Shown: positions 55,648-58,701, counted from the first letter of the whole stretch. The stretch is DNA of 63,722 nt, filler included, from Bigelowiella natans CCMP2755 (GCA_000320545.1; 9 parts of 9 records of this genome joined end to end with filler, not necessarily neighbours in it); one strand, 5' to 3'. The notes: generated from the sequence alone by a model not told the origin. Program-made: numbers and translations.

Positions 55648-58385
55648 CTCTATCAAGCTATCGATAATTACGATATTCTCAACTCATACGAACATATTGT
55701 ATCATTATATCGATACATACAAAGTTCACAATCCACATCTATAATTATTACATCGATAATATTGTATTGTAAATGCCTTACCTAACGCTTACACATATAC
55801 TACACATATTAACTTACTACCATTTTTATCTTTTGCCTCTGTGTTGGCCTTATGCTCCAATAGTGTCTTCACAACGTCCGATTTGCCACGTTTAGACGCC
55901 AAATGCAACGGAGTACGTTCTAGATTATATCAAGTTGTATGGCCCCAATTAAGTACAACAAACAATACATATAACATCAAAACCAATCGAAAATCAATCA
56001 AACACAAAACATTCTCATCTTCAACCACAAATAATTTAACCGATAGAAAACAAAACGCGAAAGGGATATCAGTAATATCATCATGAATACTATATTTTCT
56101 TCCATGTATCATATCTAATACGTTATCCTAGATTGTAACAACATATATCCAGTTTCCTACTACACATATTAACTAACTACCATCTTTATCTTTGGCCTCT
56201 ATGTTGGCCTTATGCTCCAACAGTGTCTTCACAACGTCCAATTTGACATTTATAAACGCACAATGCAACGGAGTACGATCTAGATTATGTCCGGTTGTAT
56301 GGCCCCAATTCAGAACAACAAACAATACATTTAACATCAAAACCAATACATAATCAATCAAACTCAAAACAATCTCATCTCCAAACGAGGAGCTAATGAA
56401 ACACGTACAAAAATATATATATTACAAAACTGCAGCATCACCTCAACCACGAATAATCAAACCGATAGAAAACAAAACGCGAAAGGGATATCAGCAATGT
56501 CATCATGAATACTATATTTTCTTCCATGAATCATATCTAATACGTTATCCTAGATTGTAACAACATATATCTAGTTTCCTACTACACATATTAACGAACT
56601 ACCATCTTCATCTCTGGCCTCTGTGTTGGCCTTATTCTCCAACAGTGTCTTCACAACGTCCGATTTGCCATTAAAAGACGCAAAATGCAACGGAGTCCCT
56701 CCTAGATTACATCAAGTTGTATGGCCCCAATTCAGAACAACAAACAATACATTTAACATCAAAACCAATACATAATCAATCAAACTCAAAACATTCTCAT
56801 CTCCAAACGAGAAGCTAATGCAACATGTACAAAAATATATATTACAAAATTGCATCATCACATCAACCACGAATGAATAAACCGATTGAAACAAAACGCG
56901 AAAGGGATATCGGTAATATCATCATGAATACTATATTTTCTTCCACGTATCATATCTAATACGTTATCCTAGATTGTAACAACATATATCTAGTTTCCTA
57001 CTACACATATTAACGAACTACCATCTTCATCTCTGGCCTCTGTGTTGGCCTTATTCTCCAACAGTGTCTTCACAACGTCCGATTTGCCATTAAAAGACGC
57101 AAAATGCAACGGAGTCCCTCCTAGATTACATCAAGTTGTATGGCCCCAATTCAGAACAACAAACAATACATTTAACATCAAAACCAATACATAATCAATC
57201 AAACTCAAAACAATCTCATCTCCAAACGAGGAGCTAATGAAACACGTACAAAAATATATATATTACAAAACTGCAGCATCACCTCAACCACGAATAATCA
57301 AACCGATAAAAAACAAAACGCGAAAGGGACATCAGTAACATCATCATGAATACTATATTTTCTTCCACGTATCATATCTAATACGTTATCATCAATGGTA
57401 ACAACATGTGTCTAGTTTCCTAATGCACATATTCATTAAGTACCAAACATATCTTTGGCCTCTGTGATGGCCTTATGCTCCAACAGTGTCTTCACAACGT
57501 CCGAGTTGCCATTTTTAGACGCAATATGCAACGGAGTCGATTCTAGATAATATCAAGTTGAATGGCCCCAATCAAGTACAACAAACAATGCAAGTGACAT
57601 CAAAACCAATAGATAATCAATCAAACACAAAACAATCTCATCTTCAAACGAGGAGCTAATGGAACACGTACAAAAATATACACATTACAAAACTGCATCA
57701 TCACATCAACCACGAATAATTAAACCGATAGAAAACAAAACGCGAAAGGGATATCAGTAACATCATCATGAACACTATATTTACTTCCACGTATCATATT
57801 TCATACGTCATTATCGATGGTAACAACATGTATCTAGTTTCCTAATGCACACATTAACTAAGTACCATGTACATCTTTGGCCTCTATGTTGGCCTTATGC
57901 TCCAACAGTGTCTTCACAACGTCCGGGTTGCCGTTTGCAGACGCAAAATGCAACGGAGTACGTCCTAGATTATATCAAGTTGTATGGCCCCAATCGAGAA
58001 CATCAAACAATACACATAACATCAAAAACAAATGGAAAATCAATCAAACACAAAACAATCTCATCTCCAAACGAGGAGCTAATGGAACACGTACAAAAAT
58101 ATATATTACAAAACTGCATCATCTCATCAACCACGAATAATTAAACCGATTGAAAAAAAAACGCGAAAGGGATATCAGTAATATCATCATTAATGCTATA
58201 TTTACTTCCACGTATCATATCTAATACGTTATTATCAATGGTAACAACATATATCTAGTTTCCTAATGCACATATTAACGAACTACCATCTTTATCTTTG
58301 GCCTCTGTGATGGCCTTATGCTCCAACAGTGTCTTCACAACGTCCAATTTGACATTTATAAACGCACAATGCAACGGAGTACGAT
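52010..58385 (-). CDS. ROCO protein core: ankyrin repeats, Roc GTPase, COR (5' end beyond the gap)
   Basis: Seven ankyrin exons and a capping exon (GLTALDVAKQMKNKELIELL), then WNRSRLMLVGK-GRSGKSALYNSL (P-loop), TAST (switch I), LTVWDYAGQTVFYTTH (G3), FWLQSI..FAIVGTHMD (G4), FFPVDN, and COR IPMMWTKV...MLSKFHDLGVAVYF...AILNP, FMVPCML. Confidence 0.9.
54236..54365 (-). repeat. 54-bp coding tandem repeat (EENKKKREKAKLEKRREE), ~2.3 copies, inside the Roc insertion
   Basis: Direct repeat visible in the DNA and in ORF 53843..54451. Confidence 0.85.
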
Positions 58386-58701
58386 CTAGATTATGTCCGG
58401 TTGTATGGCCCCAATTGAGTACAACAAACAATACACATAACATCAAAAACCAATAGAAAATCAATCAAACACAAAACAATCTCATCTTCAAACGAGGAGC
58501 TAATGGAACACGTACAAAAATATACATATTACAAAACTGCATCATCACATCAACCACGAATGATTAACTCGTTAGAAACAAAACGCGAAAGGGATGTCAG
58601 TAATATCATCATGAATACTATATTTTCTTTCCACGTATCATATCTAATACGTTATCCTAAATTGTAACAACATATATCTAGTTTCCTACTACACATATCA
58701 C
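55795..58701 (-). repeat. Tandem array of ~420-bp exon+intron cassettes, each with one 99-nt ankyrin-repeat exon (7 seen; the array runs into the gap)
   Basis: Exons at 55821-55919, 56181-56279, 56603-56701, 57022-57120, 57444-57542, 57866-57964 and 58287-58385. All have a CTAG acceptor and G|GTA donor in phase 1. Spacings are 360, 422, 419, 422, 422 and 421 bp. Confidence 0.95.

Follow-up and report, generated by a model that had tools for sequence, protein, structure and literature searches.

How can a unicellular eukaryote renew the binding surface of a protein without disturbing its scaffold or its reading frame? The question is raised by a gene on the minus strand of the window analysed here, a stretch of 63,722 nucleotides (nt) from Bigelowiella natans CCMP2755 (GCA_000320545.1) in which nine records of the genome are joined end to end with filler. 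The gene carries an array of ankyrin-encoding exons ahead of the exons for a Roc-COR GTPase. The reading that we favour, with a probability of about 0.58, is that it encodes a recombination-diversified non-self sensor, an ankyrin-Roc-COR protein with an N-terminal array of exchangeable exon-plus-intron units.

The seven-cassette ankyrin array itself is a confirmed observation. Seven exons of 99 nt, with AG/GT borders and phase 1-1, lie between 55821 and 58385 (table 1); the original prediction had described both the exons and their translations correctly, and all are on the minus strand. One ankyrin repeat is encoded per exon, and one of the exons aligns without gaps to designed ankyrin repeat proteins (DARPins) and to ankyrin-1/2. 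Tandem Repeats Finder resolves the tandem unit as exon plus intron (422 nt, 6.4 copies, 90% matches). Pairwise, the exons differ at 0–17 positions per 99 nt. The unit introns are 320–323 nt long, the last 261 nt, and share 87–94% identity (approximately 91%; mean p-distance 0.093), so that they are similar rather than, as first described, near-identical. Since every exon has the same length and is symmetric, the gain, loss or swap of any cassette keeps the frame. The edge of the piece falls inside another intron copy; the start of the array and that of the gene are therefore cut off, the array holds more than seven units, and at least one further cassette is predicted upstream of this intron copy 0.

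The copies vary chiefly where an ankyrin domain would bind. Repeats are numbered here so that TPLH occupies positions 3–6, and the positions randomized in DARPin libraries are then what we take to be 32, 33, 2, 10, 11 and 30, in the register of the DARPin alignment. These six were fixed before testing, from the original prediction, and variable sites were mapped to the surface by alignment to DARPins. At the six codons, 15 of 18 bases vary among the seven copies, compared with 52 of 233 intron columns (22%; p = 3e-7); the remaining exon bases vary at about the intron rate (15/81, 19%). Half of the total amino-acid diversity falls on these codons (permutation p = 8e-4), and exposed outer-helix positions are nearly invariant among the seven cassettes. 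Variation on the binding face is thus in excess of the intron rate. The claimed clustering at the beta-turn and helix 1 is borne out, and the proposed comparison of exon with intron divergence sets the binding-face codons above the intron rate and the rest of the exon level with it. The match to DARPin positions holds as an excess there; framework positions have also changed in exons 1 and 6. Proximity to splice sites was considered as a cause of the clustering and ruled out, because the helix-1 codons 10–11, distant from splice sites, show excess variation on their own (p = 2e-4). The codons for TPLH and DVVKTLLE are identical except for one silent change, as had been noticed, and two of nine fourfold sites vary compared with the 22% intron rate. 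Their silent identity follows from recent homogenization and, being no more than the introns predict, was set aside as a special signal.

The intron copies carry a mutational signature, an addition to the original prediction. Of the 74 columns that read TpA in the consensus, 24 show T>C or A>G changes, as against 3 of the 142 remaining A/T columns (p = 5e-10, odds ratio 22). The excess persists without gap-near and AT-run columns (11/39 versus 3/103, p = 4e-5) and among singletons (p = 4e-7). The changes are symmetrical across the two strands and uneven among copies, ranging from 1 in intron 6 to 11 in intron 2. The reverse polarity, CpA>TpA, resembling repeat-induced point mutation (RIP), was rejected because 0 of 42 consensus CpA/TpG columns vary, and CpG decay was dismissed (3 of 16). 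Array introns are barely TpA-depleted (rho 0.91; downstream introns, 0.99), which points to modest exposure. Of the 16 transition sites in the exons, TpA mutation covers 6 (codons 10 and 32 contain four of these), and it leaves all 20 transversions unexplained; it was therefore discarded as the full cause of exon variation. As a pattern, part of the raw variation in the copies comes from a mutation process that is context-specific. T>C and A>G changes on TpA, on both strands, also mark hypermutable virus-derived regions of B. natans, where integrated viral or other foreign DNA is targeted at a 1000-fold raised rate with TpA depletion, while the ordinary mutation spectrum of this organism is AT-biased (bioRxiv 10.64898/2026.01.13.699255). 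The array shares the changes, the context and both strands. It differs in being an expressed, spliced host-type gene rather than viral or transposon DNA, and in that its changes are mixed with other mutation types and far less exclusive. The case for equating the two signatures is circumstantial. Polymerase eta prefers WA motifs, and the source may instead be error-prone synthesis accompanying recombination, or a background common to the whole genome.

How did the units come to resemble and differ from each other? A mosaic pattern and long identical tracts indicate that they were copied and patched piecewise, with break points in introns and within exons. A single tree cannot accommodate 44% of the informative site pairs, and sites that are compatible lie near each other (neighbour test, p = 4e-4). 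Units 4 and 5 share an identical tract of 266 nt; units 1 and 6 share one of 106 nt across acceptor and exon, after which exon 6 tracks exon 2 and exon 1 tracks exon 3. The duplication and swapping of units that had been envisaged are accordingly upheld by these mosaics and tracts. Contigs from one DNA run and three RNA runs, which show presence only, point to a wider family. Cassette joints absent from the window occur in RNA (KE-ERTPLH, KE-DCTPLHF, KE-DCTPLYLAS and KD-GRRTPLH, read by eye), together with an additional cassette, GCTPLHLASGNCDSD, that has nine changes at the same variable positions. A family cassette whose donor is changed from GT to AT (matching window position 58286) is found in DNA and in each of the three RNA runs, its entire intron retained. 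Judged by the window copy, a stop follows about ten codons on, and the product would be ankyrin-only. Transcript depth of this dead-donor cassette is near that of the present gene in two of the three RNA studies. A second C-cap (GRTALDIAK) follows two different cassette ends, of KDKD type and RDED type, in two RNA runs. With these extra cassettes, the second C-cap and the dead-donor cassette in the reads, the family is larger than the window's array and common to several genes. DNA depth over the terminal intron is approximately four-fold in its 5' part and single-copy in its 3' part, as it is over the C-cap; the 5' part is predicted from this to be common to paralogous arrays. Sharing of cassettes between genes is most likely, judging by the second C-cap and the multi-copy terminal intron. 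The summed DNA depth over the array, approximately 6x single copy, is inflated by overlapping short contigs and is not a copy number. Six single matches in a DNA pattern scan of metagenomes were taken as chance.

Cassette diversity might be driven by splicing instead. All cassette exons are symmetric, the second C-cap start is reached from two kinds of cassette end, and KDKD/KDKE ends are joined to several different exon starts. In this gene, however, all three RNA runs contain only the adjacent joint of exons 6 and 7, with no joint (among contigs that show presence only) bypassing a window exon, so the skipping of units put forward in the original prediction did not appear. The variable joints may stem from paralogues, and exon skipping in B. 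natans is reported to be low or noisy (PMC6142364). A leading role for splicing is unlikely, if worth keeping in view. The order of the array could also be an assembly artefact, in which cassettes of separate loci were collapsed or mixed. The piece ends within the array, the DNA runs contain only 0.77–0.80 of sampled words, exons 4 and 5 are identical, and exon 3's own letters (57327–57525) have no exact contig in the one DNA run or the three RNA runs, an absence from presence-only contigs that may reflect bubble removal in assembly or a true difference in array content. Against this, the DNA contains, with the window's letters and at approximately single-copy depth, exon 7 together with its flanks on either side, the central part of intron 5 and the unique central part of intron 4, and RNA has the joints from exon 6 through exon 7 to the C-cap. 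Repeat bubbles are dropped in contig assembly; the order could be wrong and the cassette family would still exist. An artefact is very improbable.

The array opens into a signalling protein. RNA-type contigs of three separate studies contain GT-AG joints between exons 6 and 7, between exon 7 and the distinct C-cap exon that had been anticipated, and at every later intron to COR. The reading frame is kept from the cassettes through the C-cap, Roc and COR exons, and one DNA run equals the window letter for letter outside the array. When the gene model is compared with proteins exon by exon, every downstream Roc-COR exon matches Roc-COR proteins. The Roc motifs G1, G3 and G4 are in frame across RNA-verified exons, with a weak Pfam Roc match (E = 5e-4, single exon). 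COR follows directly: COR-A is above the Pfam cut-off (E = 9e-9), and the second half lies on the next exon. By its predicted domain content the gene is a ROCO (Roc-COR) protein, in agreement with the GTPase first proposed. The closest named Roc-COR relatives are those of chlorarachniophytes (Amorphochlora amoebiformis and B. natans) and Hondaea, at 35–47% identity; an identical protein was not found. The stretch is present in fourteen DNA runs of 100–175 million letters, which belong to twelve studies (one from 2021, the others from 2025). They agree with the B. natans mutation-accumulation lines sequenced by JGI, whose founder was sampled in 2021, and these short-read runs are probably of a single clone lineage. 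The TpA signature likewise points to B. natans. Beyond COR, the open frames at 43888–51783 could hold a new effector domain.

Several points weigh against diversifying selection and a receptor role. Variant codons comprise 24 nonsynonymous and 3 synonymous changes, a proportion (3/27 synonymous) that a binomial test with too few sites does not find significant (p = 0.12). A codon-model likelihood-ratio test does not reject omega = 1, either overall (p = 0.10) or at the six codons (p = 0.57), and the suggested check thus gave a dN/dS not significantly above 1. With neither test significant, diversifying selection is argued here from the intron yardstick, which presumes that introns are neutral and are homogenized no faster than exons. 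Framework residues have changed too, as in S>F, G>V and S>L in exons 1 and 6 and in G>C, a conserved glycine included; the changes G>V and G>C could be decay. Finally, an effector domain was not found in the C-terminal stretches (approx. 2000 codons), where Pfam, NCBIfam, PADLOC and Atlas searches and a single-sequence AlphaFold model (predicted local distance difference test score, pLDDT, 34) returned no domain. Such observations would suit a recent tandem expansion with concerted evolution and relaxed surface constraint, entailing neither adaptive diversification nor a receptor role. A dN/dS not significantly above 1, the framework-breaking changes of exons 1 and 6 and the family member with a dead donor and retained intron are all consistent with it, and unequal crossing-over alone yields high-purity repeats. 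Relaxed sites, however, are expected to vary at about the intron rate, whereas the binding-face sites vary approximately four times more often. The exposed outer-helix positions, expected to be tolerant as well, hardly vary, and TpA mutation, on the exon counts given above, does not make up the difference. We consider relaxed expansion improbable.

The recombination-diversified sensor has close parallels in other lineages. Brown-algal ROCO genes encode one leucine-rich repeat (LRR) per exon (72 nt, phase 2); these exons recombine, and an immune receptor has been proposed (PMC3341825; PMC11378527). The analogy to Ectocarpus ROCO drawn in the original prediction proves close, with ankyrin in place of LRR. 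Both have a repeat array N-terminal to Roc-COR in which each symmetric exon encodes a single repeat, residues that vary on the concave face, and intra- and intergenic recombination, the former supported here by p = 4e-4 and the latter by indirect signs. The brown-algal genes are further marked by spare exons on the non-coding strand or inactivated exons in introns, by positive selection on concave-face codons and by alternative splicing of repeat exons; of inactivated exons, the present family has the dead-donor cassette, which lies outside the piece. The exons here are 99-nt, phase-1 ankyrin exons, which makes the array an analogue and not a member. It differs further in that whole exon-plus-intron units are approximately 90% alike, in its long C-terminal region and TpA signature, and in having no spare or inverted cassette exons inside the piece, whose edge cuts the array; the host is a unicellular rhizarian as opposed to a multicellular stramenopile. 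In brown-algal NB-ARC-TPR genes, each exon encodes one tetratricopeptide repeat, or TPR (PMC3341825; Teng et al. 2023 as cited in PMC13449251). Repeat-per-exon cassettes and probably inactivated exons on the coding strand are common ground; the repeat and the NTPase are different, and the sensor is C-terminal there.

The second parallel, also new relative to the original prediction, is fungal. NOD-like receptors (NLRs) with high internal conservation (HIC) among their WD40, ANK or TPR repeats include the Podospora HNWD genes, Pa_7_10370 and Pa_2_8180 (PMC13449251). Like the present array, they combine near-identical repeats (80–100% DNA identity there) and few hypervariable binding positions with concerted evolution and inter-gene repeat exchange. 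Ankyrin versions are known, and a repeat-linked mutator, RIP in fungi, adds diversity. Strains of the fungi also differ in their number of repeats. The array is not a member of this group: they have a NACHT or NB-ARC ATPase in place of Roc-COR, and neither domain has a match anywhere in the piece. Nor are they described as one-repeat-per-exon (PMC13449251), whereas the recombining unit here includes the intron. An NLR with ankyrin mini-exons (2012, as cited in PMC13449251) likewise varies an ankyrin sensor via exon structure. As summarized in that citing source, it does so by alternative splicing of mini-exons, involves no whole-repeat cassettes and is not a ROCO.

The ANK-ROCO architecture is already known, including in oomycetes and Gonium (PMC11378527). 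The order ankyrin-Roc-COR is shared with A. amoebiformis GAB5368405.1, the Bigelowiella-like transcript P0163, the oomycete and Gonium proteins and animal DAPK1. In DAPK1 the ankyrin repeats are divergent and fixed. The A. amoebiformis gene (L009:2001-29659) spans 27.6 kb, which hinted at hidden cassettes; it proved simply intron-rich, with approximately 53 exons of 26–270 nt whose borders are unrelated to repeats and with introns filled with AT microsatellite. As this relative is without such an array, the cassettes arose within a lineage. A description of an ankyrin-cassette-per-exon ROCO array was not found in the literature searched. By analogy, the array is best read as convergent with brown-algal LRR-ROCO genes and fungal HIC ankyrin NLRs. 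It would be the third time that a signalling NTPase has independently been fitted with exchangeable repeat units whose binding face varies, after LRR and TPR exons in brown algae and HIC repeats in fungi, here with ankyrin exons on a rhizarian ROCO.

The mechanism proposed for the sensor has the following steps. (i) Copying and recombination take place between units of the array and, most likely, between paralogous genes as well. (ii) Recombination would hold introns and framework codons approximately 90% alike, with concave-face codons several-fold more diverse than introns. (iii) TpA-biased point changes probably feed part of the raw variation. (iv) Selection presumably favours new binding faces, the ligand being foreign and changing (a virus, bacterium, prey or non-self cell). 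(v) Ligand binding would switch the Roc-COR GTPase dimer, and the C-terminal region would give the output. Diversification most likely proceeds across generations and not by a programmed somatic mechanism. Giant viruses that infect chlorarachniophytes are strain-specific (PMC13196603) and, by analogy, are a plausible selective agent. The same diversifying array might serve a non-pathogen ligand, such as a self/non-self or mate determinant, prey, or an internal partner that evolves fast. Fungal HIC repeats have a known part in allorecognition (PMC13449251), and an immune effector domain was not found here; the cytoplasmic GTPase architecture suits an intracellular sensor. We hold a non-pathogen ligand to be doubtful. 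Speculative, too, is the idea that a TpA-directed antiviral mutator also acts on the cassettes and, with recombination or skipping, gives rapid clone-to-clone variation of the receptor. An active mutator together with shuffling would amount to a hypermutation-plus-shuffling repertoire in a unicellular eukaryote. The TpA signature may in any event connect a mutation process known until now from foreign DNA with a receptor-like gene of the host. For such questions a clonal culture of B. natans exists, as do mutation-accumulation lines with sequence data and the strain-specific giant viruses ChlorV.

Table 1. Features of the ankyrin-Roc-COR gene in the window, in transcript order.
Feature	Position	Strand	Basis or remark
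Intron copy 0, truncated by piece edge	58386..58701	-	89% identity to intron 2 over 314 nt
Ankyrin cassette exon 1, 99 nt, phase 1-1	58287..58385	-	2 nt from exon 6
Ankyrin cassette exon 2	57866..57964	-	alignment to DARPins, ankyrin-1/2
Ankyrin cassette exon 3	57444..57542	-	
Ankyrin cassette exon 4	57022..57120	-	identical to exon 5, inside 266-nt identical tract
Ankyrin cassette exon 5	56603..56701	-	
Ankyrin cassette exon 6	56181..56279	-	joined to exon 7 in three RNA runs
Ankyrin cassette exon 7, last unit	55821..55919	-	single-copy DNA depth; RNA joint to C-cap
Six homologous inter-cassette introns	55920..58286	-	last one 261 nt by a 59–62 nt deletion
Terminal intron, 541 nt	55280..55820	-	
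C-cap exon, 92 nt, phase 1-0	55188..55279	-	RNA joints
Linker and first Roc strand exon	55027..55125	-	RNA joints
Roc P-loop exon, GRSGKS	54751..54880	-	RNA joints, frame
Roc exon, K/E-rich insertion and switch II motif WDYAGQ	53894..54501	-	RNA joints
Roc C-terminal exon, G4 motif THMD	53356..53664	-	RNA joints
Roc end and first half of COR-A	52830..53173	-	Pfam COR-A E = 9e-9; 175 Roc-COR hits; RNA joints
Remaining COR	52011..52620	-	5' joint is an RNA loose end; 3' end inferred from GT and frame
Long in-frame exon after COR, approx. 800 amino acids	49324..51783	-	joint inferred from AG and frame
Further long open stretches, candidate exons of the same gene	43888..49475	-	open frames

Some smaller observations concern this gene and its relatives. 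In its 3' part, immediately ahead of the C-cap exon, the terminal intron contains a decayed trace of the unit intron (55345–55415, 69% over 71 nt), a hint that this C-cap intron was derived from an older unit. One RNA run contains a minor alternative acceptor at 54956, which lengthens the transcript by 76 nt and shifts the frame ahead of the P-loop. The K/E-rich insertion within Roc is a 54-nt tandem repeat (54243–54381, 2.6 copies, 96%). The transcript P0163 (L011:122-460) has two ankyrin repeats that are 83% alike in DNA and differ at turn and helix positions; it is possibly a second cassette-like family, and its Roc-COR is 68% identical to that of B. natans Bigna1 135587. The C-terminus of the latter protein (P0162), read by eye, appears to hold a CHAT-type protease-like region with a P-loop ATPase after it, which for a ROCO protein is an immune-like combination.
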